In this document: positions 1,348 to 59,589 of the stretch, in pieces
How the letters are laid out: each line of letters starts with the position of its first letter
Position numbering within the stretch: position 1 is the first letter of the stretch
Assembly (NCBI GenBank): GCA_043228905.1
Contig: JBHGNT010000001.1
Location: 27,032,001 to 27,096,000 of the forward strand
DNA from: Azolla caroliniana
Lineage: Eukaryota; Plantae; Polypodiophyta
Reading direction: 5' to 3'
DNA length: 64,000 bases
Position numbers and translations under genes: made by a program
Notes under the pieces: model-generated
Database searches by the model: none
Told to the model about the DNA's origin: nothing
The model's input: the letters and a program-made list of their open reading frames with translations, nothing else

Positions 1348-1349
<2 letters not shown>

Positions 1350-1830: not shown

Positions 1831-2049
1831 AACCAAAAGTAGTTGATCATATGGATAACTTTAGAGCACATCCAATTAGATAATCAATTGTGCTTTAACC
1901 TCCTCCATAGAAAGAGAGAGAAACAAAAAAGGATATCTCAATTCTAGCATTTCCTTTTCATGTATGGCTTAAGGTGGTCTGATCAATTGTGGTCTCTATG
2001 GTATCTTAATATCTTTGTTACCATAGTCCAAGAAAGCTCTTGAAATGGT

Positions 2050-4637: not shown

Positions 4638-5343
4638 TATCACTCGAACCTGCAAATCTTAATAAAATGCAAGTAAAAAGTGACTAGATCTCAGGGAGAT
4701 CTTAACCCTGGAAAGAAAAAAATAGAAAGGTAATGAAATCTTTTTAAGTATTGAATTTCTCATATGAACCGTACGTTGAGACTCCTATATCACGAAAGAC
4801 TATTTCATGAATGCATATCATACATTTGTTTAATCAAACTACACTATGCTATAACCTAACTAATCTGAGTAAGGTTAAGATTTTTCTATACGCAACTATA
4901 ATGGAATCAGACCCATATGCGTCATAATCAAATGGAATTCGCAATCGCTCGTACAACATCAAACTAAACTAAACAGTGACCTCAGTAGCAAGTTCAAACT
5001 ATTCATTGCTACAACGGAATCAGTCTAGTGTCTCTGTCAACAAAGCAAAGTACAGATTCCACTACGAAAAAACACACGGGGAAAAAACTATGAAGGTATT
5101 TTCCTAAAGAATTGGGCTAGCCCTTAAAGCATATTGGCTTTCACTAAATCCAACTCTTGCAAGAAAAAAGCTTGCAATCAGCAATCTAGCGCACTTCTAG
5201 AAACAACCATGCCAGTAAATCTTTTCTGTCCATATGAGATCATTCTGACACAATCTAAGAAAAGTAGCCAACAATATAAGAGCTATATCCATATTGCTCC
5301 AAGTGTGCCAATTCTCCTACCTTTCCTTATCTCTCTAGAATTA

Positions 5344-12605: not shown

Positions 12606-13038
12606 TGTTGAGATTTAAAGCTCAACTAAGTTTAGCCATTTAGTTAACCACATAACTTAGTTATTACCTAGATAGAATCTAGTTAGAATGTTAACTATAA
12701 AGTCTTTGGTAGGATTGTGTTCCTTGTACTTAAGTGGGATACCTTCTAGATCCCCCACTATCAAGTTCATTTAATATAGGACTTACACCCTTATACCTAT
12801 ACATGTTCTCCTCACATATGTGCACCTTTGCACATGAGATGTATGTATACCTCATTGCGGGTATTTTTTATTTTTGATGTCTCTTTAATATAAGTAAGAG
12901 TTCCTTGAGATACACTTATTAATCATCCCCCATTTATTGTTCATAAGTGTAACTCTCCCTCTCTCTTCCTCTCACACACATATCATATAATATTCTGCAA
13001 CTTAATCACATAATTAGTTAATTACCTAATTATTAACA
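12606..13038 (+). repeat. C1 5' LTR
   Basis: TG...CA ends; matches 16038-16348 plus 35207-35345. Confidence 0.9.
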
Positions 13039-13050
13039 TGGTATCAGAGC
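13039..13050 (+). promoter_or_regulatory. C1 primer-binding site (tRNA-iMet)
   Basis: TGGTATCAGAGC directly after the LTR. Confidence 0.9.
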
Positions 13051-16037: not shown

Positions 16038-16348
16038 TGTTGAGATTTCAAGGTCAACTTAGTTAATTACGTAACTTAGTAGTTACCTAGATAGAATCTA
16101 GTTAGAATGTTAACTATAAAGTGGGATACCTTCTAGATTCCCCACTATGGGATACCTTCTAGATTCCCCACTATCAAGTTCATTTAATATAGGACTTACA
16201 CCCTTCTACCTATATTCTCCTCACACATGTGCACCTTTGCACATGAGATGTATATATACCTCATTGTGGGTATTTTTTTTTATGTCTCTTAAATATAAGT
16301 AAGAGTTCCTCGAGCTACACTTATTAATCATCCCCCATTTATTGTTCA
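16038..16348 (+). repeat. C1 3' LTR, left part (continues at 35207-35345)
   Basis: Preceded by PPT-like tgagcttgagcgagcg; homologous to the 5' LTR; split by C2. Confidence 0.9.
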
Positions 16349-17172
16349 TGTTGAGAGATCATGCTCAACTTAGTTTAGTTAGTTAGTCAACTATGTAACT
16401 TCGTAGTTACCTAGATAGAATCTAGTTAGAAGTGTTGACTATAACGCCTTAAATATGACCTTGTACTTAAGTGGGATATTCTAAATCCTCCACTCCTAAG
16501 TACATTTAATATAGGACTTACACCTTAGTACCTATATTCTACTCACACATGTGCACATTTGCACATGAGATGTATGTATACCTCATTGTGGGTATTTTTG
16601 TATTTGATGATGATGATAATGCTAATTTAACATAGTTACTCATCCCCCATCTTGTGTTGTTCATAAGTGTATCTCTCTCTCTCTCTCTCCTTCTTGCATG
16701 CTTTCTCTCTCTCTCTCTCTCTCCTTCTTGCATGCTCTCTCTCTCTCTCTCTCTCTCTCTCTATTGTTTGGGTGCAACGGTCGTGCTGTTGTTGCCACAT
16801 TGTCGTCGATGTTGTCTGCGACGTCTATCGCCGCCTGCTACCATGCTGCACTCTCTCTCTCTCCCCCCCTCATTGTGTTGTCGTCTGTTGCCGCGCTGCC
16901 GCCTCTGACGTCTATCGCCGTCTGCGTGCTGGACGACCTGCTGGCGTTCGTCATCGTCCGTCGTAGTCGTCGTTGCCGTTGCCGTGTTCTTCTCTTTCTT
17001 GTTCTTGACGTTGCCGAGTGCCGTGTTTCTTTTCTTGGGGGCGCATCCTTCCTCTGTGGGTTCTTTTAGCATGCTCGTCGCGTGCAAACTGCCGATGTGA
17101 TTGCGACATACACACAAACTCGGTTAAGTCTCGAACCCATTTATTTTATCTTTTTTTCCTATTGACACTACA

Positions 17173-17979
17173 GTGTCTAAACGAAAGGAACATAAGGATA
17201 CACAAGATGAGGCTATAAGTAAGGAGGACTCTTTAGATATGTTTAATCGTTTAACAAAAATAGAGATGGATATGAAAAAATGGGTGAAAGACGTCGAAAC
17301 CCACAAGAAAAAAGATAGAGAGGAAAAAGACGCCCTCAAGGCCGAAATAGAAAAACTTAAAGAGGAAAACACAAACCTCAAACAACAACTTAATGACATC
17401 GAGGTATCCCGAGACGTCAGTAAAATATCCTCCATAGAGGATATAAAAGATGAGATCAAAAAAGTTAAAGAGGAGGTTAAAAATAACATAGAGTTAGCAA
17501 AAACGGGTTGGGTAGATGTGGTTAAAAGAAACATTAAAAAAGAAATAAAAGATGAAAATATTGTTAATACCACCCTTGAAGAGGAGAAAATGCGTCAGGC
17601 CCGACGCCTAAATGTGTGTGTCACTGGGCTCAAGGAAGGTGCATCCCCGGACGAGGATGCACAAACACTCTGGAAAATGTTAGGGTACACAACGACCCTA
17701 CCTATCACCAAAGCTTGGAGGGCCGGACGCGACACAACTACGAAGAGAGCCTTAGTTCTTCAATTTAAAGACTTAGACTCTAGAATCACTTTCTTTAAGA
17801 AGAGACCAATTCTTCGAGGATTGGGTGGGGACCCTATCTATCTCGATGAAGACCTCACCAAGATGCAAATTGAGCATCGCAAGAGTTGTATGCCAAAGGT
17901 TATGCAAGCTCGTAAAGAAGGGCATCACGCCTTTTATCGAGATGGGCGAGTGATCATAAATGATTGCACTACTAATTGA
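17173..17979 (+). CDS. LINE ORF1: coiled coil plus putative RNA-binding domain
   Basis: K/E-rich coiled coil followed by EEEKMRQARRLNVCVTGLKE...IYLDEDLT, typical of non-LTR ORF1 proteins. The true start codon is uncertain. Confidence 0.8.
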   Translation: MSKRKEHKDTQDEAISKEDSLDMFNRLTKIEMDMKKWVKDVETHKKKDREEKDALKAEIEKLKEENTNLKQQLNDIEVSRDVSKISSIEDIKDEIKKVKEEVKNNIELAKTGWVDVVKRNIKKEIKDENIVNTTLEEEKMRQARRLNVCVTGLKEGASPDEDAQTLWKMLGYTTTLPITKAWRAGRDTTTKRALVLQFKDLDSRITFFKKRPILRGLGGDPIYLDEDLTKMQIEHRKSCMPKVMQARKEGHHAFYRDGRVIINDCTTN

Positions 17980-18015
17980 CGGCGTGTGGCCCATGTGACA
18001 GAAAACACACTTAGG

Positions 18016-21000
18016 ATGACCTTATGGAATTGTAACGACACACTCTGGACACACCCCGGCCGCCTAGAGGAGATATTAAAGGAATCAGATATAGTTTGCC
18101 TAGTAGAAACACACCAAACCCCAAATAGGGGACTCCCACGAGTCGAAGGATTTTGTTGGGAGTCGGCTTTTAGACAAACCTCATGTCAATGCACTACCAA
18201 GGGATCTGGAGGTGTCGCAATATTGTTTCGGAGGGAGCTACATAATAGGATAGAAATACTGAGCACAAACCCAGAAGCTCGTTTTATGTGGGTGAAAGTC
18301 TCCACAAGCAAGGACAAGGCAATATTTTTTGCCATTTGTTACTTCCCCCCGAAAGGCTCTCGTTATAATCTAGCTGGCAAGGCAAGATTAGTTGATGAAG
18401 GAGTGCCACATGGGCCTTCCCCATATGAACCTCTATCGGATGACATAATCCGATATTCTTCCCAAGGAGAAGTATTCCTTGTAGGAGACTTTAATGCGAG
18501 AACCCAATCCCGACAATGCACAATATTTCAAATGAATAGAAACCTAGAAATGGTAAATGTCGATCCTTTAGACATAGGCACCACACATAGATCAAAGGAT
18601 CAAGGTGCGGACGCCACGAGCTTTGGCCATCATTTGCTTGAACTTGACAGTCGGCACCAGATGGTCATATATAATGGTTTAGCCAAGTGGCCAGGTTCGG
18701 AAGAGCTCACATGTTTCCCACATGGAGGAGGGGAAAGCACAATTGATTATCTAACAGGACGCCATGAAGCTACCCACATGATTAACTCCTTCCGAGTGGC
18801 CCCATGTCCTATTGGCGCAGACCATAGTTTCTTATACTTCGAGCTAAAATGCGATATCTCTAACGTCACCAACTCTAGTCAACCACGCCATGACATCACA
18901 ATAACATCACAATACATTTCACACATGATCTCTCTGACATATATGCTCGACATGTTCAAGCCCATCTCTCCTCCCTTGATCCCTCCCTACCTTTAGAGAG
19001 CCTTAGTACAAAACTCACACACATCCTTCACTCTACAGCAGTTAGCAGTTTCCCATACACGAAACACTCAAATCAAGGTAAAGTAGGATCTATGCCACAA
19101 AATAGATGGTATGATGAGGATTGTAGGTGCTTACATAGACAACTTACAATATCGCAACTCAATGGTAGTATTACCTTAGTACAAGCTCGTAAAGAAATGC
19201 GCAAGATGACACGTCGTAAGAGACGAGCATGGGAGGCATCCCAATATTGGGAACTCTACCATATGCTCATGAGTAGTGATTGTGCCACTGCATGGAAGAG
19301 ATTACGGGAACCAATACCAGAAACACCCATCGAAGATCCCGAAACTTGGCACACTCATACAGAGAGACTTTACCAAATCCCAAACCAACCACCCATTCCA
19401 ATGCCTTCTACACCCCGACCTACTGTGGGGACACTCTTCACGACCTCTAGGGTCACGAAGGTCATAAAGAAATTACAACATAGGAAGTCCATGGACCACA
19501 CAAGATTGCGAGCAGAACACATCATATATGTGAGAGAGTGCCTAGCTCCCTTGCTAACTCTAATCTTCAATCGCGCCCTCGCAGAGGGTTTTCCACCACA
19601 ATGGACCATGAACACAATGGCCCCCATACATAAAGGGGGGGACCCCATGGACCTAAATACTTATAGGACCATTATGATAGGTCATACCCTTGCTAAATTA
19701 TATAGTGCAGTAATGGAGGCAGAGTTTAGCGATTATATGGAGACCTTAAATCTTCGTGCGCCTGAACAGGCTAGCTTTAGACGAGCCTTCTCCACTATTG
19801 ATCATATCTTCACACTTAGATGCTTAATTGACCAGACTAAGGCTCGCAAGAAGAAACTATATTGTTGTTTTGTGGACTTCCGCAAAGCCTTTGACACGGT
19901 CCCTAGAGAGCGGTTGTTTGATAGGCTTAAGAGCTTGAGGATACCAGATGACATGGTTTGGGCCATCTACGCACTATATGAACAAGTGTCCAGGTGTGTT
20001 CAATGCCCAAGTGGCATATCCGGTAGTTTCACTAGCACTATTGGTGTAAAACAAGGTTGCCCCTTATCTCCAACTCTTTTTGGGATCTACATTGATGAGA
20101 TCACAAATTTTATTGCTCGTAAGGGAGGCAATGGAGTAGTCCTTGGGGATACACAGGTACGTATCTTGCTCTATGCAGAAGACATAGTTTTGCTCTCTGA
20201 ATCCGAACACGACCTACAAAGGCACCTTAATGCCTTCGATGACTTTTGCACACAATGAGGATTGGTAGTGAATCTAGGGAAAACTAAAGTCCTTATCTTC
20301 CACACGTCGGCCCAAGTTAGAGCTAAGTGTCACCTAACTATCTCCCATAGCCCAATTGAGGTGGTTGGATCATATGTCTATCTCAGAGTCACTTTCAGTG
20401 CCCGCTCAGGTAAATTTTCGATGACACAAGCAGCGAAGGATAGACTTACAAGAGGACATGCACCCCTCTCACTCCTCGAGAGAAAATGCCACCAAGCATA
20501 CTTCCAAGAGCCACGAACTAAAGGGTGGCTCTTTGACTCATTAGTGACTCCCTCTTTCATGTATACATTAGCGGTTTGGGCTCCAGGACTACCATCTTTC
20601 ATGTGGACGCAATTAGAGAGACCATTGGTGATGATGTTATCACGCCAACTCCGAAGCAAATTGTCAGTCCCACATGACATTATTAGGGCTGAGTTCACTC
20701 TACCCCATATGTTAGTAGAAGCACTTTTTCAACTTGTAGTCTTTATCCACAGGATACATAACCAACCACTTGATAGAATATCCCATCAAGCCTTTAAGGC
20801 TTCTCGAGCACTTTATGAGTCCGGCTATACTAGCTCATGGTATGGCATGATGGTGAGTTGGCTTCTTGCCAACGGTCTAGACATTAATAACCTTCCCCCC
20901 CTTAAGTACGACCACACGACTGATAACACTTTAATCTCTCATGAGGACTGTAATAAAATAATACGCCAAGAACTATGGCAAATTTATACTCAGTATAAAT

Positions 21001-21740
21001 GGATCACCCCACTAGAGCCACTCCCATCTAAAATGTCATACTATAAGGAACACTTTATGCACTTCTCTAAGTTAGGTTTTATTACACGGCCAAAATATCT
21101 AGATGTATTCTTACCGCATGCACTAAGGGTTGCCATTGGTCAACTTAGAATATCATCTCACCAACTTGAGATTGAGAATGGACGTACTAATGGAGTCCCT
21201 AGGGAGGAAAGGATATGTAGGTTATGCCACATAGAGATAGAGGATGAGTACCATTTTACATGCAAATGCCCCACCTATGCCAAGATAAGGGCAAAATACC
21301 AAGACATACTTGGTTCCTCTCCCATCCTCCCTAAACTATTAGATATACTAGATATAAAGAAATTAGGTAGATACATCTTAGAATTGAAACAACACAGAGA
21401 GAATAAGTTACAAAACGTTGATAATAATGTTGCTAATGTTTACCAACATGTAACAAATGAAGTTTTTCAGGAACAGGGGGAGACAATGAATGTACAGACA
21501 CCTACACCACTCGGGCTTTTCCTTGATGAAGCAAAAAATCAAAGAAGAACCAAACGCCCTTGGATGCCGGGTTTCAAACCAACTCGACGAGATGTAGAAG
21601 CAATAAAGAAAATAAGGGAACGTGAACTACACTGCCTAGAAGCCATGGCTAGGGTACTCTATACACCGGGACCATGGGTCACACCCACACCAAAAACTTT
21701 TGACCACCCACTTCTTTTTGAGAGACTTGGGTGGAAATGA
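18016..21740 (+). pseudogene. LINE ORF2 (APE endonuclease, RT, C-terminal CCHC), disrupted
   Basis: Motifs GDFNART, TIDY, ADHS; FVDFRKAFDTV, GVKQGCPLSPTLF, YAED in place of YADD; RICRLCHIEIEDEYHFTCKCP. Frameshift near 18.9 kb and TGA at 20256. Confidence 0.9.
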
Positions 21741-21902
21741 GATTAGGCTTAGTGCAAAGTTTTGTACACTACTAGAACCCTCTGAGCTTAAGCTATTTTC
21801 TTTTATTTTAGTTTTGATGATTGGATAAACACTCATTTTTGTTGTAAACCAATTGTCTCATGGGCCAAATTTGGCCTTAGAAGACGTTAATATATCTTTC
21901 TT

Positions 21903-21942
<40 letters not shown>

Positions 21943-22213
21943 TCTCACACACATACACACACATATCACATAATCTTCCGCTTATCAACTAATCACATAA
22001 TTAGGTACTAATTAACCCTTAATTACTTACCTAGTTTTTAACATGGTATCAGAGTGTGTGGTTTAGCACATCCACTAAGCCCACCCAACTCTTCGTAATT
22101 GTGTGTTCGAAACACCGACAACAAATTCCGGCCATTCGCTACCGTAGTGCCGCTACGTAGCACGTACACATGATCGAAGGAAGAAAAACAAAAGAAGAGA
22201 AGACACCATCAAC

Positions 22214-22521
22214 ATGAACACACAAATGGGTAGCTCGCTCCCTAGCGAAAAGCTAGACCGGAGCAATTATTCATCTTGGGAGTACAAGATGACCCAATAC
22301 CTCTTCGGCCAAGGGTATTGGAGCTACATCAACGACACACAAGAAAATCGACCCGACTCGAAAAATGCCGACTATGCAACATGGGAGCAAGCGGCGAGTC
22401 GAGTCATGTATTGCTTGGCAATATGTGTCCATGACCACATGCTTAGCCACATTCGAGACGCCAAGATGCCCAAAGAGGCGTGGGAGAACTTAAAGAAAAT
22501 GTTCACTGCCAACACAACCGT
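22214..22521 (+). pseudogene. C2 gag N-terminal part (continues at 29302)
   Basis: MNTQMGSSLPSEKLDRSNYSSWEYKM...ANTT, resuming as ARKIQLRQELNNIRQ after G1. Confidence 0.88.
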
Positions 22522-25500
22522 TGTCGTGAAGAAAACATAGGCGGATTCGGGCAAAAAGGCGCATGAACCGGCTCTTACACGGATGGACGCTTGACGTGAT
22601 ATTTTGATATTGATTCATAAATGGATCAACTGATGTAAATACTAAGTAGTGCACATTTATTAGGAGGAATTGTGCGTATCTCTGTCAGAAGGGACAGGGA
22701 ATAAAGCGATTTGACTAGGGAAAAGGGCACCCTTTTTTTTGGGAACTATTTAAGGAGAGGAGAGAAGGAAGACCAAATATCGCGCGTTGGCAAAGACGAA
22801 GTGGGGCGGTAGAACTGAGTGCCGAGCGCTCTCTTCTCCTCCTCCGGTCGTCGGTCTCTATGGGTGTCGAGAGTTCGCTGCCTCTGCTTCGTTGACAGCC
22901 CGTGTGCTTCAAGCAGAGGCTCTCCCCCTTTTGGTTCCTGGAGTTGTGTGTCAGTCCTCTGTGTGCGTGAGTAGGACCCCGTGTCAGGCCCATCACCGGG
23001 TCGCCGATTGTAACTGTTCGAGTTGTAAGCTATTGATTTTAGTAATTGGGTTCTTGTTTTCTTGCTCTTAACTCTTCTCTGTGTATCTCCCTCTCTCCCT
23101 CTCCCTCTCTCTCCCTCTCTCCCTCTCTCTCCCTCTCTCTCTCCTTCGTCCAAGACCCCCATGGTCCCGCCTCTTTCTACACGCACGCGCGTAGCAACGC
23201 AACACCGCCCGAAAGATTCAACTCCGACAAGAGTTGAACAACATTCGGCAAAAAGACATGTTCGTGTCGGACTACACCGCCAAGATCAAGTACGGGTTTG
23301 ACGACTCGCTTCGGCTGTCGAGGCGGGACTTCATGGCGTGGGTGGAAAGCCCCGGAAAGGGGAGGAACACGTCGGCGCTCCTCCAGGAGTTCGAAAAACG
23401 GTTCGCGAGGCTGTCGACGTTGGACCGGACCGTGCTCGAAACGAGTCGAGTACTACTATTTGTCAAGTCGGTGGACGCGCTCAACAGGGAAAAGGTGGGT
23501 CCCCTATTGGAAACGGATGAAGGGCTCACAACAGACTGGGCCGCGGTAAAATGAGTCTGCAGCCGTTTCGACAAACGGCGCGATTGGAGCAACAGAAGCT
23601 CGTCGGGGTCAGGGCCGGTCCCAGGGAGGAGGCTCGAGGAGTCGGTATCGGTGCCAGCCGGTAGGAAAGAAGAAACCGGAATCGGGCTAGAGTCGGGGTC
23701 GACATCGAATGACGTGGTCAGAGGCCCATCCGGAGGAGCGGCTCTGGAGGAGCTGACACAGATGGTGCACGACCTGCAGATCGCACAGGCCCGGAGAGAC
23801 AGTGGAGAACAACCTCGCGACCGGAGGCCGCCGGCTGGGCAGCGGTGCATGTGGTGTGACGTGATCGGTCACATTTGGAAGGATTGCGCGGATTTTGCCG
23901 ACGCACTCAGGACCAACGTGGTGTACCTCTGGAATGGGCGGGTGCACGCGAGCGAGACCCTGAGAGCCCTAGAACTAAATACGGGTCGCGACGGAATGAA
24001 GAGGTTGATGGAAGAGGCCGCGGCACGGCACGTTGAAGCCGTTAACTACACAATGTCGGCGGGAATTCGGGTCGGGGGCGACGAGTCCCGAAAGGTGAAG
24101 GACTCCGGATTCTGGCCGCTAGTGCTAGAAGGCTTCTCCGGAGTTCGGCTGAAGAAGGAAGAGGCGGACCGCGCGGAACAACGGGTCCAGGAGGTCACCG
24201 GATGGGACGATCCGGTCGAAGAGAAAACGGGCTTCGTAGAAGCCGCTTGCCAGAACTACGAGGTTCTGGTGGAAGACAAACGGGCAGGAAAGGCCCGGGG
24301 GGGGGGGGGGGGGTCCCCCGCAGAGGTATGAGACCCGGTTCGAACCGAAACCGACCAGTGCCGGCAACCTAGGCGCGCCGGACGGAAAGAAGCCGGCGGG
24401 GTTTCGGTTGAGCACCGAAATCAAGAGAGCAACGGACCTACGGAAGGTCCTTGAAGAGCGGATCCTCGACAGTAAAGTGGAGCTGTTGTTGCGGGAGGTG
24501 CTGGGAATCGCCAAGAGGGAGTTCCACGACTCCATCGTAGACTTGGTGAAATGGAAGAGGCTCTCCACGGAGCCAGAACCGGAGAAGCCGGTGGAGGTGC
24601 GGACTACGCACTTAGAAGACGTGGCCCTAGAAGACGAGTTGGCGGAAAGCCACTACGTGAAGCCGCATTGGGCCAGGGCAACTACGGAAACCCCTGTGCG
24701 GATCGGCGACGTTCCGGAACCGGTGGTGGCCTTGGTAGGCCATGGATCCGAAATCAGCCTGATGTCCATGGATTTCTACAAGAAGGGTAAATGGCCGATC
24801 AACACCAAGCACGAGTGGAAGATACACGCGGCGACGCGTGCTACGGAGGAGTTGCATGGTGCGTGCCCGAATATACACGTAAAGGTCGTTGACGTCGAGA
24901 TAGATCAACATTTCTTCGTGCAGGAAACATCCTCGCACCCGGTGATTCTCGACGAACCATACATTACGGCAACACGCATGGAGATGAAGGTGCTGGACAA
25001 CGGTTCGGCGTACGCGCGCATCAAGAGCCAGGACGGTGGGCATTCCGTCCAATTCATGACCGTACGACTGAACCATGAGAGGAATCGTGAGACCCTCAAC
25101 GGCGGCGACCGAGGGGATTTTTAGAGAGGGCTATCAAGGTGTGGGGCCGCGGTAGTCCGGACGTACCAGAAGAACCCCACACATGTACAGTAGGTAGGAA
25201 GTTTTGGTTCTCCGAAAACGGAGGTTGTACTATAGCCAACGTCAACGGCTGGGAAAGGAAGCGAGCGAAGGAGTGGCTCAGGAGATGCAGAATCCTCTCC
25301 CTCGACGAAGAGATCAACAGAGTTGTGGAGGCGGTCTCTTTTGACGACACCTTGGGCGAGTTGCGAAAGGTGATCGGTGAAGACCTTAGAGAAGACTGGA
25401 CCGTTCCGGTAGGATCGATGGGAATGTACGAAGTCATCGCGGACTTCGGGGAAAGGATCGGGTCGAATCGGACGGCCCGCATGGATACAAAGTACAAGAC

Positions 25501-28500
25501 TGTTGACCGGAAGGTGAGGCCAGTCGCGGCACCCTTGGCAGAGGGCAACGAGGAGCGGGTAAAAGGGGTCGGGTCGGACCCAAGTTTACGAATCCGGCTG
25601 GCATAGGGCACTGGTTCACCGACATAACGCTACGGGAGGTCAAGGTCGGTGGGGGTGGCTTCCTACTGCCGGCGGAGGAGGACATGTTTCGGAGAATGCT
25701 CGGAAGGCATGGGAAAGCCTTCGCGTTCTCGCCAGAGGAGATCAGGTGCGTGGACCCAACAATCGTCGAACCGATGGTGATCTTCACAGTACCGCATGTA
25801 CCGTGGAATCTCAAACCGATTCCGGTGCCGAGAGCTCACATCCCGAAGTTGATGGAGCTTCTGAAGCAGAAGGTGGAGATGGGTATCCTCGAACCGTCGA
25901 GTGCCTCGTACTCTAATCGGTGGTTTACGGTGCCGAAGAAGAACGGCACGCTACGCTTCATTCAGGACCTGCAACCGGTCAACAGGGTGACCATCCGTAA
26001 TGCAGGAATCAGACCGACCATAGACGGTCAATCTATTCGGTCGGTGACTTATACTCGGGGTACGACCAGTTCCAGCCGTGGAGAGCAGGGATATCATGAC
26101 GATGTGAACTCCTCTCGGCCTGGTACGAATGTGTACCCTACCACAAGGAGGGACAAATTCGGTGGCGCATATGGTGAACGCAATGAACAAGGTGCTCAGG
26201 GACTGCATCCCGGACATCACCATGCCATTATTGGATGACATCCCGATAAAGGGGTGTCCGGTGGAAGATGCGGACGAGACTGTCGGGACGGACGGATGCC
26301 AGAGGTTCGTCGTGAACCACATCAACGACTGCGAGAAGGTGTTGCAGAGGCTCGAAAACGCACGACTCACCTTTTCCGGAGAAAAATCTGCGTTCAGGTA
26401 GTCGGAGATCCTGGTGGTCAGACACCTATGAGGGCCTTACGGCAGGAAACCGTCTCCAGCAAAGGTAGAGGCCATCTCCGCAATGAGGAACGATTGCGGG
26501 TCGGTTACGGAGGTCCGTAGATTCTTGGGTGCATGCGCGTTCTACCACATCTGGATCCCGCACTACGCACATGTCGCGGAACCCCTCTACAAACTATTGA
26601 AAAAGGGGCATAGCTTTGAGTGGAGGACGGAGCACACAGAGTCGGTACGGAGACTAAAGGAGGCGCTTACGGTAGCACCAGCTTTCCGAAAAGCGGTTTA
26701 TGGCAAGGATGTCCCCATTTGCGTGACGATGGACATGAGCCCGATTGGGATCGGGTGGGTAATCAGTCAGGAGGACAAGGACGACGTACGGTTCCCGATC
26801 CGGTTCGAGGCGAAGGTATTGAGCGAGCGGCAGCGAGGATACACCCAAGTTAAGCGCGAGCTTTGGGATATCGTTTTGGCAGTCAAGGCCGACAAGGACT
26901 ATCTGATCGGGACGGAGGTGATCATCGAGACGGACTGCCTGCCGATACTCAGCATGGTTTCCGGATGCACGACGCCGGACCTAGCAATGCTCCGGTGGAT
27001 AGCGTATGTTAAGTTCCTGAACCCGGAGATATGGCACATATCCGGAAAAGATAACGCCATGGCCGACATGCTTTCGAGAGCGAGGTTCAACGATGAAGAC
27101 GACATGGTTTCAGATGACGAAGAAGTCGGCGAGGACTTCTTATGGTCGGCGAACGTAACGACGAGGAAAGGGGACACTCCGGCGCTTAACGAATTTGACG
27201 AAAGAAGGTACGACGGGGAGTGGCTCCAAATCGGGAGGTTCCTACGGGCGATGACGCCGGATGTAGCGTGGACGAGAGAAGAGGTGAGCCGGGTACGGAA
27301 GAAGGCGTACCAATTCTTCCTACGAGACGGGTGTATATGGAGGCACCCAAAGAAGAAAAATGGCATTCTGCTCCGAGTAGTGGCAAGGAAAGAAGAACAA
27401 GGGGAACTACTAGTGGCATTTCACGAGAGTCCCTGGGCTGGGCACCGCGGAACGTGGGCCACATTCGAGAAGCTGAAGGAGAAGTACTGGTGGCCGGGGC
27501 TGTACCAGGACGTGCATCGGTTTGTAACGACTTGCGAAAGCTGTTAGATGCACTCCGGGTTCGACATCGGGACGAGCTACACCCGACCTACCTGCCTACG
27601 GTCCATTTCAAGTGGGTGGTAGACTTGGTGACGATGCCGATAGGAGTAGGACAGATGCGATACCTGGTTCTTGCGCGAGAAGACTTAACGAACCAGGTGG
27701 AAGGCCGTGCACTGCAGAACAAGACAACCGCGGCGGTATGCCGGTTCCTGATCGAAGAGGTAGTGTGTCGATACGGGTGCGTCGGGAGGATCGTGGTGGA
27801 CCGGGGAGAGCTGGATGCGAGGGAGGCTGAGGAGTTGTTCGACCGGCTAGGGGTCAAACTCTCCCTCACTACGGCATACAATCCGGAGGCGAACGGAAAG
27901 GTAGAACGTGGGCATGGGTCGATCGTAAAGGCGTTGGTGCGTGCATGCGGAGGGCAGGTCGGGAATTGGCCGCGACTCCTTCCTTACGCACTATGGGTGG
28001 ACCGAACTACGCACAGTTCGGTAACAGGGTTTATGCCGACCAAGCTGATGTATGGACAGAAGCCGATCATGCCGGTGGAACGGACGGTTTCTTCGTGGGC
28101 GGCGGTAGATTGGAAGGACAAGATGAGTCGGGAGGAGTTGTTGGCGGCGCAGATTCGGCAACTCGAGCGGAGGCCGGAGGACATGAAACGGGCAAAGGAG
28201 AAGCAGCGGGCGGCAAGGGAACGGAACAAGACCCGGTTCAACTAGACGCACCGGTTGCGACCAAAGAAAATCGAGGAAGGCGATTGGGTTTTGGTGTACG
28301 ACAACAACCTCGACAATCAGCACAAGGCGTTGCAAAAGTTCGCGAGGAGATGGTTCGGGCCCTACACGGTGACGAGCGCGAACGACAACGGCACGTACCA
28401 CCTCGCGGAACTTGACGGGACACGACTAGCAGTACCGGTGGCCGGGAAGCGGATCAAAGCGTACAAGAAGCGGTTCAAGGATGAGCCGGACCCAGAGGGC

Positions 28501-29301
28501 GCGGACGAGAGCGACGACGACGATCAGTTCAGGCCCGGCAAAGAATCGGAGAGCGCCGACTGAAGCCGGTTTTCTTCGGTATCAACCCGTCTCTAGTGCA
28601 AGCCGGTGGATGTGCGGTTTGATGGGGGCGGATGTCGTGAAGAAAACCGGCCATAGGCGGATTCGGGAAAAAAGGCGCATGAACCGGCTCTTACATGGAT
28701 GGACGCCTGACGTGATATTTTGATATTGATTCATAAATAGATCAACTGATGTAAATACTAAGTAGTGCACATTTATTAGGAGGAATTGTGCGTATCTCTG
28801 TCAGAAGGGACAGGGAATAAAGCGATTTGACTAGGGAAAAGGGCACCCTTTTTTTTGGGAACTATTTAAGGAGAGGAGAGAAGGAAGACCAAATATCGCG
28901 CGTTGGCAAAGACGAAGTGGGGCGGCAGAACCGAGTGCCGAGCACTCTCTTCTCCTCCTCCGGTCGTCGGTCTCTATGGGTGTCGAGAGTTCGCTGCCTC
29001 TACTTCATTGACAGCCCGTGTGCTTCAAGCAGAGGCTCTCCCCCTTTTGGTTCCTGGAGTTGTGTGTCAGTCCTCTGTGTGCGTGAGTAGGACCCGATGT
29101 CGGGCCCATCACCGGGTCGCCGGTTGTAACTGTTCGAGTTGTAAGCTATTGATTTTAGTAACTGGTTCTTGTTTTCTTGCTCTTAACTCTTCTCTGTGTA
29201 TCTCCCTCTCTCCCTCTCTCTCCCTCTCCATCTCTCTCTCCTTGGTCCAAGACCCCCGTGGTCCCGCCTCTTTCTACACGCACGCGCGTAGCAACGTGGC
29301 A
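22522..29301 (+). mobile_element. Ty3/Gypsy element G1 (no chromodomain) nested in C2 gag
   Basis: LTRs 22522-23204 and 28633-29301 (TGTCG...CA); PPT gatgggggcgga at 28621-28632; 4-bp TSD CCGT/CCGC; domain order gag-PR-RT-RH-INT. Confidence 0.92.
23291..28563 (+). pseudogene. G1 gag-pol, disrupted by stops and frameshifts
   Basis: Zinc knuckle CMWCDVIGHIWKDC; PR ALVGHGSE (catalytic D lost); RT WFTVPKKNGTLRFIQDLQPVN, LPQG, LLDD; RH IETDC, NAMADMLSR; INT H..GH...CESC, YNPEANGKVERGH, WFGPY. Confidence 0.9.
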
Positions 29302-31690
29302 CCGCCCGAAAGATTCAACTCCGACAAGAGTTGAACAACATTCGGCAAAAAGACATGTTCGTGTCGGACTACACCGCCAAGATCAAGAGCATTTCCAACT
29401 CGCTTGACTCCATCAAAATAAACGTCGACGAAGACGAGATGGTTCAAGTATGCTTGGACGGCCTCTCACAACGATTCGACTCGTTGAGGACGGCAATCTT
29501 GGCGAGGGAAAACCCTCCCTCGTTCTTCGACCTTCAATCAATGCTAATGGTTGAAGAGAACCACGTCCAAACCAAAACCAAGACATCGGAAGGACAAATG
29601 TTCTTCTCGAATTCGGATGGTGGCCGAGGACGAGGTTACAACGGTAAAAGAGGTCAATTTGACCCATCACACGAAGGGAAATCAAACCTTCACGGAAGCC
29701 ATTGAGGAACCTTCGTAAGAACGGGGAGCTTCCACGCCGAACATGGTCGGCAAACGAGGCCCACAACTTGCAATTATTGCGGCAAAGTCGGCCACTACAA
29801 GGCGGAGTGTCAGAAAAAGAGAAGTGAGTCGGCTTCAACAAGTCGACAACTCACAAACTACACATCGAATTCCACCTATGACGATCATAGTGAAATTTTT
29901 ACAAATTACGCCCCAAATTCCGACTACGGCGACCGTGGCGGAATGTTCGTAATGAGGCATAGAGCGAACTCTATGATGGCCTCCAACTCGGAAGACGTGT
30001 AGTTCGTCAATTCCAGCGTCTCACATCACATGACATCTCACGAAGAGTGGTTTCGTGATTTACGAACACCTGATCGACCCGGCTTCATAGAGACCGGAGA
30101 CGACACCACACACCCCATACGGCACATTGGCAATGTCCCATTTGGGAAAGAAGGTGAGCAAACTTGCATCAAGAATGTCTTGCACGTGCCCACATTAACA
30201 AAGAATTTGGTCTCGGTCAGCCAAATCGTGGAGCAAGGCATGCAAGTCCACTTCAACAACGAAGGTTGTTTCATTGAGAAAGGGGTGGACTCATAGCAAA
30301 GGGGCGGAGAGACAGCCGAATGTTCATCCTTGATTCGAACGAGGTGAAATTGGCAATGTACGCCAAAGGTCTCAAAATCGAGACAAGCATCGAGTTGTGG
30401 CAAAAGAGAATCGGCCAGATAAACCTCCAACGGCTTCGAAGCGTGTCAACTTGGCTAACAACATCGATTCCCATTCCCGAAGGAGAGCTCCGCAAGCGAA
30501 GGCCTCCTCGAAATCATACACTCGGATGTATGGGGATTGGCTCAAATGCCGACGATCGGCGGATGCCGATACTATGTAACCTTCATCGATGACTACTCGC
30601 GCTACATGTGGATCTACCTGATGAAGAAGAAGAGCGAAGTGTTCTCCCACTTCCAAAAGCTCAAGGGGCAAGTCAAAAAAGAAACCGGTCGGCACATTTG
30701 ATGCCTACGATCGGATGGAGGCAAGGAGTACTTCTCCGATGAGTTCACCTCCTACCTCCAAAGTGAAGGCATTCGGAGAGAATTCTCGTGCTGACACACA
30801 CCCCAACAAAATGGAGTCGCCAAAAGGAAAAATCGGCAAATACTCGAGGTAGCACGCGCCATGATGCATGAGAAGCACATGCCGAACTTCTATTGGGCCG
30901 AAGCGGCATCCACGGCCGTCTATCTCATGAACCGGTGCACCACCAATGGAGTGCATGAGCTAACTCCATACGAGCTCCTCATCAGAAGGAAGTTGATCTT
31001 GTCACACCTCATGGTGTTCGAAAGCATTGCGAATGTACGCATCCCGAACGAACAACGACAGAAGCCCAACACGAAGTCGGAGGAATGTATCCTCATAGGA
31101 TACTCATCCAAGAAGAAGGTATACAAGTGCTACAACCCTTCTACCCGAGCGGTTCGAGTAAGTCGAGACGTAGTCTTCGACGAGTCCGCATCCTGGTACG
31201 CACTAGAGACAACTACGACTCCGACTCCGCTCGACCCAGAATCCGCCGAACAAGAGGTAGAAGATGGAGATCGCTTCGAACACATGTTCGAAGAAAGTCC
31301 GATTACGGCAAGGCCTAGTGGGCCACAAGAGCCTCCAAGCGACCCAAGCACGTCGCAGCCAAGTACGAACTTGGACAAAGGGAAAGGTAAGATGCCCGAA
31401 TACGAAGTCGACCACCCCGACGACAATGATTTGGATGGATCGACTCCCTCACTAGACAATGAGTTCGGTGTACCTATCATGCAGATACCCGGAGTAAAGA
31501 AGGCACTCACATCGGTGAGCGAAAAACTTCGACGCTCATCTAGAGCCAAGAACCCCGTCACTCGACACGGCTACAACGAGTACATGGCCCATCACTATGC
31601 CTTTGCAATTAAGGTAGTGGTCGAACAAGAGCCCAAGAGCTCCACCGAAGCGGCGCGTAACCCATGATGGGTGGAAGTAGTCGACCTTCG
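29302..31690 (+). pseudogene. C2 gag C-terminus, protease and integrase; RT/RH absent
   Basis: CNYCGKVGHYKAEC knuckle, SHHMTSHEEWF, KNLVSVSQI, FIDDY, FYWAEAASTAVY. Sequence passes to the 3' UTR right after EPKSSTEAARNP. Confidence 0.88.
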
Positions 31691-32181
31691 CCCACACACT
31701 ACAAGCCTTCGTCACCGGCTTGAGGGGGAGGAACCGAGATTGCCACGGCAAGGAAAGTCGAAGGCCAGACGGAAGCCGCACAAAAGCCGACATCGGAAGC
31801 CGGACAACGCCGAAAACAACGACGGATGTCGGACGCCTCACACTTGAGCTTGAGGGGGCGTGTTGAGAGATCAAGCTCAACTTAGTTTAGTTAGTTAGTC
31901 AACTATGTAACTTCGTAGTTACCTCGATAGAATCTAGTTAGAAGTGTTGACTATAACGCCTTAAATATGACCTTGTACTTAAGTGGGATATTCTAGATCC
32001 TCCACTCCTAAGTACATTTAATATAGGACTTACACCTTAGTACCTATATTCTACTCACACATGTGTACCTTTGCACATGAGATGTATATATACCTCATTG
32101 TGGGTATTTTTGTATTTGATGATGATGATAATGCTAATTTAACATAATTACTCATCCCCCATCTTGTGTTGTTCATAAGTG

Positions 32182-32240
<59 letters not shown>

Positions 32241-32243
<3 letters not shown>

Positions 32244-33667
32244 TGAAAACACACAATTATATTAATAAATGTGTGTGAAAAACACTACTTACAATACGTG
32301 TGACAATGGAGTATGGTCACACACTAACCACACTACACTACATGGGTAGTGGAACATGCTGAATTGCCAATAGGCAAGACGAACACTCCACCAAGGAAAT
32401 AATTTCCACTTGTTCCAATAAAGAAAATTGCCACATTAGTACTCCCTTCAACTTTCATAGATATGCTTTCACTCCATGTCTACCATCGAATACGAAAGTG
32501 TTGCGCATGTTCCAATTATGACGCAATCCCCAATATCTCATAAATAGGAAAACAATCTCCATCTCTGATTTTGGGTCAGCATGTGTAAATTGTGCAAACA
32601 CCCATTGTCTAGGTGTCAAATAACTCCGTGATAAAACTTGCCAAATTTGAGAAATGTAACTCCAAATTTGGCAAGCAATTGGACATTGTATAAATCGATG
32701 AGTACTATCTTCTATCTGAACTGTGCAAAAGAAGCAGGTACCTGTTGCTAGTCCACGACGCTTTAAAGCTAATCCCAAAGGCAATCCTCCGATCAAAACT
32801 CTCCAAATGAATACCTTTGCAACAAGTGGCAATTTAGAATGCCAACTACGTTGTAAGATCTGCCACCACCCATGATCATATTTGTGTATTTTCCATTCTT
32901 CTTCAGCCTTAGATGATAACCATCCAAGAGACTCAACGGAACAATGATACAAAAGATTAGTAGTCACTTGTAACAATGGTGTTTGACCCCTTAAACTCCA
33001 ATCAATCCATGGTTGTTCTCCTGTTTGTAGAGGTAAGGGACCTTGCATCAATGCAATATTCTGTAGTTGTTGCCAAATAAACCCATAATTAGGCGGGATG
33101 CGTAATAATTGTCGTGCTTCAGTAAACTCCAAAATTCTTTGACATGGAACCTCAACTATATCTCCCACCTCTTTGACCCCCAAACGAAACAAACGATTAA
33201 ATTGAGAATGCAATCTCTCCTTTCCTGGCACCACATATCCTTGCCATCCTAAAACTACATCCACCTCATCCTCAGTGAAATCCGCATCCAATTCATGACT
33301 AATGAGATCATGCACAATACATCCAACCACATCATAAAACTCATGACGTGCTCTACTCACCTCATCTGTCATTAACAATTGTGGACCAATCAACTCTAAA
33401 AAGTAATGAAGACATATGTCAATTATTGTTGTAGGATCCACTATCAATTCATCCCCTTGCTTCACATGTACCACATTAGATCAAGCATAAGTAGGATGTA
33501 ATGCTTGGAAAAACAAATGAGATTGACATTGATTATCAATGAGTCCTTCCCTGAGTTGTCGCATCTTAGCATAACGATAACTTTGGCATTGCAACTGAGA
33601 AATAATAACATGCAATTGACTCTGAATATCCAAAAGCTCCTCATATAATGGTGTATGTATCAATAAT

Positions 33668-33670
<3 letters not shown>
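32241..33670 (-). mobile_element. Truncated, RT-deleted L1-type LINE in the (CT)n tract of the C2 3' LTR
   Basis: ORF 33474-32455 has an EN-RT linker fused to the C-terminal zf-RVT-like region (KVFIWR...CFFC...EDSTHRFIQC). (CT)n on both sides. Confidence 0.85.
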
Positions 33671-33742
<72 letters not shown>

Positions 33743-33745
<3 letters not shown>

Positions 33746-35082
33746 GTAAATAATGGCTTTCATTACGAAAGAAAAAACACCACCATGAGTAACTTACAAC
33801 AAACTATAGAACCCCTTCTATCTAGGGATCTAAAGAAAACTACGACACTAAACTCAATGCCGCCCTACACACCAATTCAAATGGCGAATATGATGATATG
33901 TGACCTTGCAGAGTTCTCTCTCTTCTTGGTTGAGATTTTGTGACTTCTCTAGCATTGTCAATTGCCACAAAAGAAGTCCTTTTAACTTAAGAACATATTT
34001 TCTCACCCCAACTTGCGAATAAAAAATGAAGGCATTCCGCATATTCCAATTGAACCATAGCCCCCAATACCTCAAGAACTCAAAAATAATTTGAAAATGA
34101 GGCATCGGTTCATTGTTCTCCATATGTGCAAAAACCCAACTGAAGGAAGATAGACTTACTCCTGTTAGAGACATCCACACTAAACTGATACACCTCCAAA
34201 CCATCCTTGCCATCGGGCATGAAATAAATCGATGCCTACTATGTTCTAATTCCACTGAACAAAAGAAACACAATCCTTTAGTAATGTTTCTTCTTTTTAA
34301 TGCATCCCCTAATGGTAAAGCTCCAACCATAACTCTCCAAATAAATACCTTGGCTCGTAGCATCAATCGAGAACACCAACCTGCCTTGATCACATGAAAC
34401 CACCAAGTAATGGGCTTATGAAAACCCCATATCTTTATAACCCTTTCTTCCAACCACTTATGTTTGTCAATCAACTTGTGATAAGCAACATTCATTGAGA
34501 TCATAGTCAATCTCTTATTTCCAACAAACCTCCAATCAAGCTCTTGAGATAGCCCATCTAAATTAGGAATTGGCTCATGCGAAGATAGTATTTGTTGCAA
34601 CTTATCCCAAATAAAGTTATAACCTTTTGGAATACGAAATGTTGATCTTATTGTTCGAAAAGCCATTAATCTTCTTTGTGAAACCAACATAGCATCCTTA
34701 ACTCTTACCAAACCCAATCTAGCCATCCGATTAAATTGAAGGTTAAGAATTTGTTTACCTTCCCACCTCAACAACCTTGATGTTGCCAAAACCTCCATTT
34801 GTAATGAATTGGCACATCCCCTTTCTTGTGGGGGATGCCATTCCACAAAATCCAACATACTTTGCCAAGATGTCAACAAATGATTAACTATCATAGACCC
34901 TGTACATTTGACATCCCTGTCAGAATTAATTACATTCCACCAATTCGCTTCAACCTTTATGTTTCCAAGCTTTATTCCGTTCTTCTCTATAAAGTAAAGT
35001 ATGCCACCATTTCTATCCAAGGTTGTACACCTTCAAACATGAATCGAATGAAAGTAAATCGACGAGCCACCATATGCTCATT
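33743..35082 (-). mobile_element. 5'-truncated L1-type LINE (second family) in the same (CT)n tract
   Basis: ORF 35020-33854 with KVFIWR...CFFCSVELEHSRHRFISC. (CT)n at 33671-33742 and from 35083. Confidence 0.85.
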
Positions 35083-35345
35083 TCTCTCTCTCTCTCTCCC
35101 TCTCACACACATACACACACATATCACATAATCTTCCGCTTATCAACTAATCGCATAATTAGGTACTAATTAACCCTTAATTACTTACCTAATTTTTAAC
35201 AGTTCATAAGTGTAACTTCCTCTCTCTCTCTCTCTTCCTCTTACACACATATCACATAATCTTCCGCGACTTAATCACATACGTGATTAACTATTCACAT
35301 AATTAGATACTAATTAACCCTTAGTTAATTACCTAATTATTAACA

Positions 35346-36476: not shown

Positions 36477-36979
36477 GTTCCGCATATGCAAATTTATTTA
36501 AAAGGCCATTTAAAAAAACATATTTGAAATCCATTTGGTAAACTTTCCAATTTTGACTAATTAATTGCATGTGACTAAGATGAAAATATTTCTTTGTAAT
36601 CTAAACCTTACGTTTGTGCACGCAATAAGCAGAACCCTTTGGAGCAATTTTGACTATATATTGATCAATAATATCATCAAATTAAATAGGTGTGAGCAAA
36701 CAATATAATAACATGAACCCCGAAGCGATGGCGAGGAGCAGGAGCACGGTGAGGAGCGAGCGCGTTGGCTAGCTGTGAGCCACTATCCAAGTTTGCGCGC
36801 AACGGCTGTCGCCAGAGGGTGTTTTGGCCGCTCGTCAGTGGCTTTTCTGCTTTGTGGTGCTGTCAGGGTTAAAACCGGAGGGAGAGGGCAGCGATGGCGG
36901 GATGTGGGTTTAGGGTTGCAAAGTCGGCCTCCAAAGCAGACGATTGAGACAAAGCTACTCTCCTTCTTAAGCGCTAGGT

Positions 36980-39171: not shown

Positions 39172-39269
39172 GATGTTATGGTGGGATGGGAGAGGCTCAG
39201 TAAGGGTGGTTGGGCGTGGACTCAAGAGGAGGGGCTATGTCCGTCATGGGAGGCTTTACTCATGTTTTG

Positions 39270-59549: not shown

Positions 59550-59589
<40 letters not shown>

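Follow-up and report, generated by a model that had tools for sequence, protein, structure and literature searches.

Both long terminal repeats (LTRs) of one Copia element in the Azolla caroliniana genome are interrupted by LINEs within their own (CT)n tract. Are such microsatellites the preferred targets of these LINEs, and if so, what directs the LINEs to them? The target preference of plant LINEs is almost unstudied, and in the open literature we found no description of microsatellite-preferring LINEs of land plants, such elements being named only for animals (fish, insects and snails). The window analyzed here is the whole stretch of 64,000 nucleotides in which the Copia element lies, and an earlier note on it had proposed that its LINEs are sequence-targeted.

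The Copia element and its interrupted LTRs

The Copia element, C2 (positions 16349-35201), has the features of the Ty1/Copia group: an LTR pair, a 5-bp target-site duplication (TSD; GTTCA), a tRNA-Met-type primer-binding site (PBS; TGGTATCAGAG) and a polypurine tract (PPT). Its interior combines a Copia-type SH3 domain with RT-RNaseH-integrase in Gypsy order, the latter probably nested, and the assignment of the core to a superfamily is provisional. The 5' LTR begins with TGTTGAG immediately 3' of the TSD. Its left part (16349-16671, plus strand) reaches to the element's own CT tract and is 97.8% identical to the left part of the 3' LTR (31862-32183, plus strand; PPT just before it); its right part (21940-22043, plus strand) is followed by the PBS. 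In the 3' LTR, the right part and a (TC)11 left over from the tract of the LTR together occupy 35083-35201 (plus strand), and the TSD comes next. The two LTRs as wholes are likewise 97.8% identical (nine differences in 421 nt).

Both LTRs are interrupted within this same tract, and no LTR base has been lost at either site. Once the LINEs were excised in silico, both aligned to three relatives that had not been hit, all with a short CT tract in the corresponding place. This bears out the claim that different LINEs had split the two LTRs at the same (CT)n. One related un-hit LTR (12606-13050, plus strand), whose CT tract at this place is short and interrupted, serves as an empty-site reference. 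C2 had itself inserted into an older related LTR (left part 16059-16348; right part 35202-35345, plus strand), whose (CT)8 (35220-35235) is intact. Because the un-hit relatives carry a CT tract at the same position, the alignment shows that the tract of the LTR predates the LINE insertions. The (TC)n that precedes the LINE in the 5' LTR (16672-16762, plus strand; delimited by TRF and from the sequence) consists of 2.5 copies of a 34-bp unit and contains a 13-nt filler, CCTTCTTGCATGC, that was duplicated along with its CT run; no second occurrence of this filler was found in the window or in the collected loci.

LINE families and their tails

The 5' LTR is occupied by LINE B (16763-21894, plus strand), a near-complete element of 5.1 kb with an ORF1, Pfam APE (PF03372, 5.6e-11) and reverse transcriptase (RT; PF00078, 3e-26) domains, a C-terminal part of 492 aa and a conserved 3' stem-loop. 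The ORFs are broken by one frameshift and by two in-frame stops; ORF1 has a coiled-coil-like stretch and the long C-terminal part a CX2C...H...CXC motif. The tail, (TCTT)3(TC)n (21895-21939, plus strand), runs into the CT tract of the LTR. Among the 11 fern copies compared, the stem-loop is conserved, with one compensatory pair (G-C to A-U). The family is highly repeated in four public runs, with a 5'-to-3' gradient of depth over 16600-22000 (excluding the repeat ends, 16600-16774 and 21885-22000); these runs were taken as Logan contigs, which are informative on depth and not on flanks. A sequence search of the APE domain against PDB gave no matches, and in a PDB search with the RT domain R2 scored slightly higher than human L1, both being distant relatives. 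Homologues of LINE B were found in ferns, Taxus, liverworts and Klebsormidium, in records that are unnamed or labeled "hypothetical"; in the Riccia relative the tails are poly(A)21 and (TCCA)4, with CT absent.

The 3' LTR contains two LINEs of the L1 type, both on the minus strand. The first, A1 (32241-33670), is 5'-truncated and internally deleted, and retains a zf-RVT domain (PF13966) and a 3' hairpin; its tail, (GA)28 in the minus-strand reading (32184-32240), is continuous with the LTR tract. Against the full-length ORF2 of its family (P0054, with PF03372, PF00078 and PF13966) it is 83-90% identical over residues 325-476 and 982-1277, residues 477-981 having been removed by the internal deletion. 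The second, A2 (33743-35082), likewise 5'-truncated and with a zf-RVT domain (PF13966), represents another family, the protein identity between A1 and A2 being only 42%; its tail, (GA)36 (33671-33742, minus strand), is at the same time the 5' flank of A1. Each of the two fragments ends in a 3' hairpin followed by (GA)n. Their domain set is that of plant L1 elements (APE, RT and C-terminal zf-RVT, with a weak match of ORF1 to the DUF4283 type), but the poly(A) tail that almost all flowering-plant L1s have is absent and (GA)n stands in its place. In two A1 relatives outside the window an A-rich run precedes the (GA)n. The RT domains of the A families and of B are about 24% identical.

A third site lies near the start of the window, where a 3' end of the A1 family, 172 bp long (1142-1313, plus strand; 89-93% DNA identity to 32243-32461) is flanked on its 5' side by (AG)8 (1125-1141, plus strand). 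It joins a B-like piece, B2 (1348-1908, minus strand), tail-to-tail through a common (GA)17 (1314-1347, unstranded). B2, recognized by blastn and tblastn, comprises an APE fragment and, beyond an internal deletion of 2.8 kb, the 3' 330 bp, and its part at 1348-1830 matches the 3' end of LINE B at about 75-78%. The 5' end of B2 is separated by a GA-rich remnant, GAAAGAGAGAGAAAC (1909-1925, unstranded), from the adjoining 5' end of an older, A2-like L1 copy (1926-3160, plus strand; 3' end degraded, end coordinate approximate). The internal control is LINE C (36684-43815, plus strand), a full-length L1-type element of another L1 lineage, which ends in (AAT)3 and sits in unique DNA between the two copies of an ordinary 17-bp TSD (36667-36683 and 43816-43832).

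Preference for CT/GA tracts

The five LINE pieces that the earlier note had described as abutting a CT/GA repeat are all present, with ends at most a few bases from where it had drawn them. All five adjoin the repeat. The tail of LINE B is (TCTT)3(TC)n and not pure (TC)n, and no copy in the window has poly(A). The count of pieces with the repeat on both sides, formerly four, is corrected to five, since B2 extends to about 1908 and its 5' flank is GA-rich. The zone within 5 bp of a (CT/GA) tract of at least four units takes up only 1.4% of the window, even with the LINE-flanking tracts included; that all five junctions, spread over three independent sites, fall there far exceeds chance, in a window that was itself selected for showing the pattern. 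AG/CT accounts for 16 of the 19 dinucleotide microsatellites of the window, and half of the AG/CT tracts there adjoin LINE ends.

A sample not selected for microsatellites was obtained by collecting 119 contigs of a metagenome set by the conserved 3' motif of B. A pyrimidine tail, (TTTC)n(TC)n, follows 105 of the 119 3' ends (the other 14 are tail-less or have a different tail), and all eight A1-type 3' ends examined have GA tails (with few 5' junctions, one of them from a collapsed contig), so that orientation follows family with no exception, as had been claimed. Ten of the 53 readable 5' junctions (19%) lie at (CT) runs of at least four units, compared with 0.50% of control positions, a 38-fold enrichment (p = 1.5e-13). 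The other 43 (81%) are away from CT tracts. The majority of the sampled copies lie in other DNA with short (TTTC)n tails, and the median tail has only three TC repeats, followed by unique DNA. Recognizable TSDs were found at three or four of the 53 junctions (including L055, with an ordinary 9-bp TSD in unique DNA, L091 and L117) by an automated search in which boundaries were estimated to a few bases and short TSDs may be missed. Many of the copies are very short (40-130 bp), and many start 96-128 bp from the 3' end, for which a SINE-like explanation was considered.

Short-read contigs under-represent long microsatellites, and the true share of copies at CT tracts lies somewhere between 19% and nearly all. 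A repeat on both sides is not found in most copies of the motif sample, but it is found in most long copies of long-read assemblies. The families share with microsatellite-specific APE-type LINEs in the sense of Kojima and Fujiwara the APE and RT domains and a 3' end that joins the target repeat in a fixed orientation. The earlier note had held that unique 5' flanks with ordinary TSDs in most copies, or a lack of enrichment over background, would speak against targeting: most flanks are indeed unique, ordinary TSDs are rarely recognizable, and the enrichment is clear. Its term "sequence-targeted" therefore holds as enrichment at the 5' flank and not as strict specificity. The A and B families show a strong preference for CT/GA tracts, not the strict specificity described for Kibi.

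Copies in other ferns

The A and B families were also found inside CT/GA tracts in Ceratopteris, in two Adiantum species and in fern DNA of metagenome contigs, often stacked or tail-to-tail. In three other ferns, most of the copies that were chosen by protein homology alone lie within (CT)n or form stacks connected by it. One Adiantum capillus-veneris copy adjoins (CT)21 where its 5' end is truncated, and its tail is (TCTT)6(TC)12; in A. nelumboides, two copies are stacked via CT runs; and a Ceratopteris scaffold bears an array of copies with spacers of (CT)72, (CT)113 and (CT)102. Tail-to-tail meetings of the A1 and B types, as in the window, recur in L045 and L100. Two full-length A1 copies are linked by A10(GA)n, and the same contig opens with GAGAGA right before a 5' end. 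An assembly artefact was ruled out, the same structures being present in independent assemblies of at least four fern sources. The Ceratopteris copy in L001 has its 5' boundary at about 4000-4133; a second LTR around it, sought as confirmation of an LTR setting, was not found.

Two full-length B copies have a repeat mainly on one side. L010, which was likewise found by protein homology alone, has (TC)7 at its 5' end and almost no TC beyond its (TTTC)6 tail, a layout that a nick at the edge of a tract fits better than long tail pairing. L064, a collapsed full-length contig, has (TC)19 at its 3' end and no CT at its 5' terminus.

Choice of target and alternative explanations

The observed tail identity, strand rule, pre-existing LTR tract, enrichment, stacking and conservation across ferns are explained, with a probability of about 0.7 for the explanation as a whole, by two unrelated LINE lineages with tail pairing at CT/GA tracts, stacking, and a strong but non-absolute preference. 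The fern genome would contain two or more LINE lineages, unrelated to each other, with RNAs that terminate in repeats of opposite strands of one microsatellite: (GA)n in the plant-L1-type A1 and A2, and (TTTC)n(TC)n in the B lineage (APE and RT), each with a conserved stem-loop just 5' of the tail. When target-primed reverse transcription starts at (GA)n.(TC)n, a nicked TC strand would provide a primer for pairing with the A-type tail, and a nicked GA strand one for pairing with the B-type tail. Because of this pairing, initiation would be far more efficient in CT/GA tracts, and orientation would be set by the family. Each insertion would keep the repeat on both sides and add a tail of its own, giving a longer tract and a fresh target, so that the CT tracts of LTRs and the tails of old LINEs would fill with stacked, head-to-tail or tail-to-tail copies. 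The preference would be tens-fold over background, with many copies, mostly very short, landing elsewhere. We infer that it is probably pairing of the RNA tail with the nicked target, rather than recognition of sequence by the endonuclease, that drives the preference.

Strict targeting by the endonuclease, as proposed for Tx1/R1-clade elements such as Kibi, would have the APE nick (GA)n.(TC)n, with outside copies as rare errors or degraded sites. The long copies in long-read assemblies, nearly all within CT tracts, agree with it, as do the family-specific choice of strand and L010, in which the entire (TC)7 lies on the 5' side, as from a nick at the tract edge. It is nevertheless improbable in view of the 43 of 53 junctions away from CT, some of them with TSDs in unique DNA, and of L064 with its CT-free 5' end, and it would require that two unrelated endonucleases (in elements whose RT domains share about 24% identity) came by convergence to act on opposite strands of the same repeat.

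No more probable is capture independent of the endonuclease, in which fragile or non-B homopurine-homopyrimidine tracts would give free 3' ends that are patched with complementary-tailed LINE RNAs. The scarcity of recognizable TSDs, the extreme truncation of many copies and the internal deletions in A1, B2 and one L003 copy would be expected of such a process. Against it, more than 100 copies have precise, intact 3' ends, conservation of the APE ORFs extends across ferns and some TSDs do exist; with 5' boundaries placed only to a few bases, other short ones may have been overlooked.

It is very unlikely that the CT/GA repeats are only element-encoded tails that expanded later, with the 5' repeats there by chance or belonging to neighbors. 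LINE tails seed microsatellites in other taxa (PMC2887409), and both the tracts adjoining LINE ends in the window and the unique flanks of most short copies are in keeping with this; but un-hit relatives already have the LTR tract, both LTRs retain all flanking bases, and randomly 5'-truncated copies adjoin CT at the point of truncation. Given representative control positions, the LTR alignment and the enrichment already contradict such an origin. Equally remote is the formation of stacks in single events by an RT that jumps between LINE RNAs, entering the next one at its tail, since the head-to-tail arrays linked by tail repeats only, and two L003 copies with an identical 5' start, could reflect it, but the outermost junctions within the LTR tract, the tail-to-tail pairs in opposite orientation and single CT-flanked copies are left unexplained, so that template jumping could supplement tail pairing and cannot substitute for it.

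Comparison with known systems

The closest counterparts of the fern LINEs are Kibi, in (TC)n, and Koshi, in (TTC)n, fish LINEs of the Tx1 group (Kojima and Fujiwara 2004, as cited in PMC3812793). From that citation, they share with the fern LINEs an APE-type endonuclease, a position within a pyrimidine/purine microsatellite, a tail made of that repeat and an invariant orientation; however, they are animal elements described as sequence-specific, whereas those of ferns belong to the plant L1 type and to a second streptophyte lineage and show a preference only (19% in the unselected short-read sample). Among R1-clade elements, Waldo in (ACAY)n, Mino in (AC)n and Dong in (TAA)n, from insects and snails, also combine microsatellite insertion with an APE endonuclease, but in other repeats, clades and hosts, and no two clades on opposite strands of one repeat are reported there (PMC3812793).

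In plants, almost all L1s of flowering plants end in poly(A), and flowering-plant RTEs end in (TTG)n (PMC3472496). Stringent-type LINEs with a 3' stem-loop and short tandem repeats have plant examples in one monocot L1 lineage; like the A and B families, they have a conserved stem-loop beside a repeat tail, which implies recognition of their own 3' end, but unlike in A and B, insertion into matching microsatellites is not reported for them (PMC3472496). A microsatellite tail alone does not imply a matching target, as Bov-B illustrates: tail repeats of Bov-B/RTE elements are thought to aid priming or the choice of the nick site, as may be the case in A and B, yet Bov-B copies are rarely flanked by tail-like sequence (PMC13295347), whereas CT flanks of the fern B family are enriched 38-fold. 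That microsatellites may be "landing pads" for plant transposable elements was suggested by Kejnovsky et al. (2013, as cited in PMC12477314), and Micron MITEs insert in (TA)n of rice (PMC3812793). These cases, as cited, resemble A and B in that microsatellites are preferred insertion sites in plants; they concern general associations or DNA transposons, whereas A and B are LINE families whose tails are complementary to the target.

Conclusions

We consider the chances even that this is the first microsatellite-preferring LINE system of land plants, in which a (GA)n plant L1 and an unrelated (TTTC)n(TC)n streptophyte lineage use opposite strands, land in each other's tails and in LTR tracts, and have been consuming and generating much of the genomic CT/GA since before the split of Polypodiales and Salviniales. 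If the preference is genome-wide, ferns would offer a natural system in which two unrelated RT and endonuclease machineries act on opposite strands of one repeat, and the contributions of tail pairing and endonuclease recognition could therefore be tested directly by tail swaps. Such a preference would also account for the dominance of AG/CT among dinucleotide microsatellites (16 of 19 in the window) and for the piling up of LINEs in LTRs and in one another. For annotation, CT/GA tracts of fern genomes would then be expected to conceal stacked, internally deleted LINE fragments.

LINE insertions in the CT tract of a Copia element

On the basis of tandem-repeat and sequence reads, the LTR retrotransposon C2, a Copia element, occupies positions 16349-35201. 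Its two LTRs are 97.8% identical, and it has a 5-bp TSD (GTTCA), a tRNA-Met-type PBS (TGGTATCAGAG) and a PPT, and sits within an LTR (16059-16348 and 35202-35345) that belongs to a related, older element. The same reads bear out, with small corrections, the observation of the earlier note that LINEs lie at CT/GA repeats and split both LTRs of C2; in each of the two, the interruption lies inside the CT tract. We compared these filled LTRs, with the LINEs excised, with three un-hit relatives, namely the LTR at 12606-13050, the host LTR of C2 and an LTR on another contig (L005). They align base for base: a short CT tract is present at the exact homologous position in all three relatives, and no LTR base has been lost at either side of the LINE insertions. 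The CT tract of the C2 LTRs is older than the LINE insertions. Because the two LTRs contain different LINEs in different orientations, the insertions post-date the integration of C2 and are mutually independent, as had been proposed.

The insertion point of C2 itself (16344-16348 / 35202-35206, TSD GTTCA) is about 13 bp upstream of the (CT)8 tract of the host LTR, and this short tract is free of any LINE insertion. A segment of the C2 interior with RT-RNaseH followed by integrase (26483-28245), that is, in Gypsy order, is probably nested; apart from it, the interior has a Copia-type retroviral SH3-like domain near the 3' LTR (30861-31667). A further LTR end, at 59552-59587, has an uninterrupted (CT)18, which a PBS-like TGGTGTCAGAGC follows at a distance of about 100 bp; CT tracts near the LTR 3' end thus seem to be common in these fern Copia families.

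The 5' LTR is split by LINE B (16763-21894, + strand, 5.1 kb), which contains ORF1, an APE domain, an RT domain and a C-terminal part of 492 aa, has one frameshift and two in-frame stops, and ends in a stem-loop followed by a (TCTT)3(TC)n tail. At its 5' junction (16672-16757), a 34-bp unit, composed of a CT run and the 13-nt filler CCTTCTTGCATGC, is repeated 2.5 times; the filler occurs at no other place in the window, nor among the loci fetched, and the repeat could represent filler DNA plus slippage. The B family is very abundant in public runs, where depth has a gradient of roughly 100-fold from 5' to 3' (a measurement made outside the junction repeats), and contigs from these runs contain a joint that omits 19096-21724 of LINE B. 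In the 3' LTR are two L1-type fragments, A1 (32241-33670) and A2 (33743-35082), both on the - strand and with a plant-L1 zf-RVT domain. The two share only 42% identity, and the 3' ends of both consist of a hairpin and then (GA)n.

At a second LINE site (1125-1925), a single (GA)17 joins, tail-to-tail, an A1-family 3' end of 172 bp (+) to a B-like piece (-). The B-like piece extends to about 1908 and carries an internal deletion, and a GA-rich remnant adjoins the 5' ends of both this piece and an older L1 copy (1926 to about 3160). In both lineages, LINE copies have repeatedly lost 1.5-2.8 kb of internal sequence (32241-33670; 1348-1908; 2628-4845 of the outside locus L003). A sixth LINE of the window, the full-length L1-type LINE C (36684-43815; 36667-43832 with TSDs), served as an internal control. 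It belongs to a third lineage (24-30% identity to the ORF2 of A1), carries a CCHC knuckle in its ORF1, ends in an (AAT)3 tail, and lies in unique DNA with a clean, ordinary 17-bp TSD (AATAATATCATCAAATT). As background, a (CT/GA)≥4 tract is found at most 5 bp away from only 1.4% of window positions, the LINE-flanking tracts included.

Copies in other ferns and in metagenome contigs

The homologues of the C-terminal part of LINE B are proteins of ferns (Ceratopteris and two Adiantum species), which identifies the window as fern DNA, and the fern copies were chosen by protein identity alone. A copy of Adiantum capillus-veneris, truncated within the RT, has (CT)21 immediately 5' and the tail (TCTT)6(TC)12, two copies in A. 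nelumboides form a stack joined via CT runs, and a Ceratopteris scaffold contains an array of copies with (CT)72, (CT)113 and (CT)102 between them. The last 40 nt ahead of the tail are conserved in all these ferns, with a predicted two-tier stem-loop and one compensatory pair. A B-like LINE of Ceratopteris richardii (L001, 3901-8140) has the tail (TTTC)5(TC)25; a PBS-like TGGTATCAGAGC lies about 100 bp past this tail, a stretch beginning TGTTGGGG precedes the LINE, and no second LTR was found within reach of the fetched sequence. This sequence context suggests another hit in an LTR-borne CT tract.

Relatives of A1, with 85-98% DNA identity, occur in contigs of plant and leaf metagenomes, which we infer to be most likely Azolla-type fern DNA. 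In one contig, two full-length relatives, with an ORF1 of the DUF4283 type and an ORF2 containing APE, RT and zf-RVT, are linked by A10(GA)n, and GAGAGA stands at the contig start, immediately before the element 5' end. Other relatives have short tails, (AG)6AAAG or an A-rich run plus (GA)4, and then unique DNA. Two further metagenome contigs contain A1/B tail-to-tail pairs in the same arrangement as in the window. In L009 (1-1980), two 5'-truncated A1 copies lie head-to-head over a (CT)6/(GA)6 run, which could reflect twin priming or two separate insertions.

When metagenome contigs were searched for the conserved 3' motif of B, at least 119 of them matched. Among the matches listed, 105 of 119 B 3' ends have pyrimidine tails (medians: 23 nt, three TTTC units and three TC repeats), and 37 ends have (TC)≥5. 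A few listed copies have (CATTT)n or other tails, as subfamilies (L036, L069, L093, L106). The 5' ends were set where homology among copies stops, and 53 junctions were readable among the matches listed: 10 (19%) have (CT)≥4 within 22 nt, and a few additional ones lie in or beside another B tail. Control positions on the same contigs gave 0.50% (same strand) and 0.23% (other strand), the excess at the listed junctions being 38-fold (binomial p = 1.5e-13). Since short-read contigs are unable to span long repeats, the 19% is a lower bound. However, the majority of the readable junctions among these matches lie away from CT tracts, and as only about 5% of the sample contigs end in a tail, short-read bias cannot hide a strict specificity. 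The targeting of (CT)n/(GA)n put forward in the earlier note thus stands as a strong preference but not as a strict rule. Recognisable TSDs are rare among the 53 listed junctions; L055 has a clean one of 9 bp in unique DNA, and the collapsed full-length B contig L064 runs at its 3' end into (TC)19 and ends at the element 5' terminus without CT. About 15 of the 53 listed copies have their start near TTAGCTTAA, at a distance of 96-128 bp from the 3' end, with unrelated upstream flanks (L012, L017, L032, L044, L063, L066-L071, L073, L074, L084, L085 and L117, the last with an 8-bp TSD), and may represent a short derivative that is non-autonomous, or a point at which reverse transcription preferentially stops.

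Target preference and its possible mechanism

Microsatellite-inserting APE-type LINEs are known in animals, and Kibi of fishes inserts in TC repeats (PMC3812793), whereas the fern LINEs show a preference and not strict specificity. For Bov-B, having a repeat tail is not enough to predict targets that match it (PMC13295347); in contrast, the listed fern B 5' junctions are enriched 38-fold for CT. Flowering-plant L1s have poly(A) and RTEs (TTG)n tails (PMC3472496), unlike the (GA)n-tailed L1-type A1 and A2. Microsatellite "landing pads" come up only in general terms in a recent review on where plant TEs are located (PMC12477314), and the open literature that we searched yielded no account of land-plant LINEs that prefer CT/GA. 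Relatives of the B lineage exist in Taxus, liverworts and Klebsormidium. In that of the liverwort Riccia (L011, 8714-8734 and 10580-10600), the same 3' motif is followed by poly(A)21 and (TCCA)4, and within this small sample the CT-type tail thus seems to be specific to ferns; the tail repeats of the lineage appear to change between sublineages.

Pairing between tail and target is the simplest mechanism for the preference. The RNA tail would pair with the nicked target strand when target-primed reverse transcription starts, (GA)n tails with a nicked TC strand and (UUUC)n(UC)n tails with a nicked GA strand, and U-G wobble, as we infer, would allow the UUUC part to pair too. Such pairing would explain the strict family-wise strand rule, the repeat retained at both sides and the many short-tailed insertions elsewhere, and also, because each insertion brings a new tract, the stacks and tail-to-tail pairs. 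Alternatively, the endonuclease itself might recognise the repeat, breaks at fragile homopurine tracts might capture the elements, or template jumping might produce the stacks. That the repeats are tails only, without target preference, is contradicted by the CT tract pre-existing in un-hit LTRs with all LTR bases kept, and by the 38-fold CT excess at the listed B 5' junctions.

In short, the target choice of these LINEs fits a strong preference, not strict site specificity. This preference is real, strong and conserved across ferns, and it is common to two unrelated lineages, on opposite strands of the repeat.
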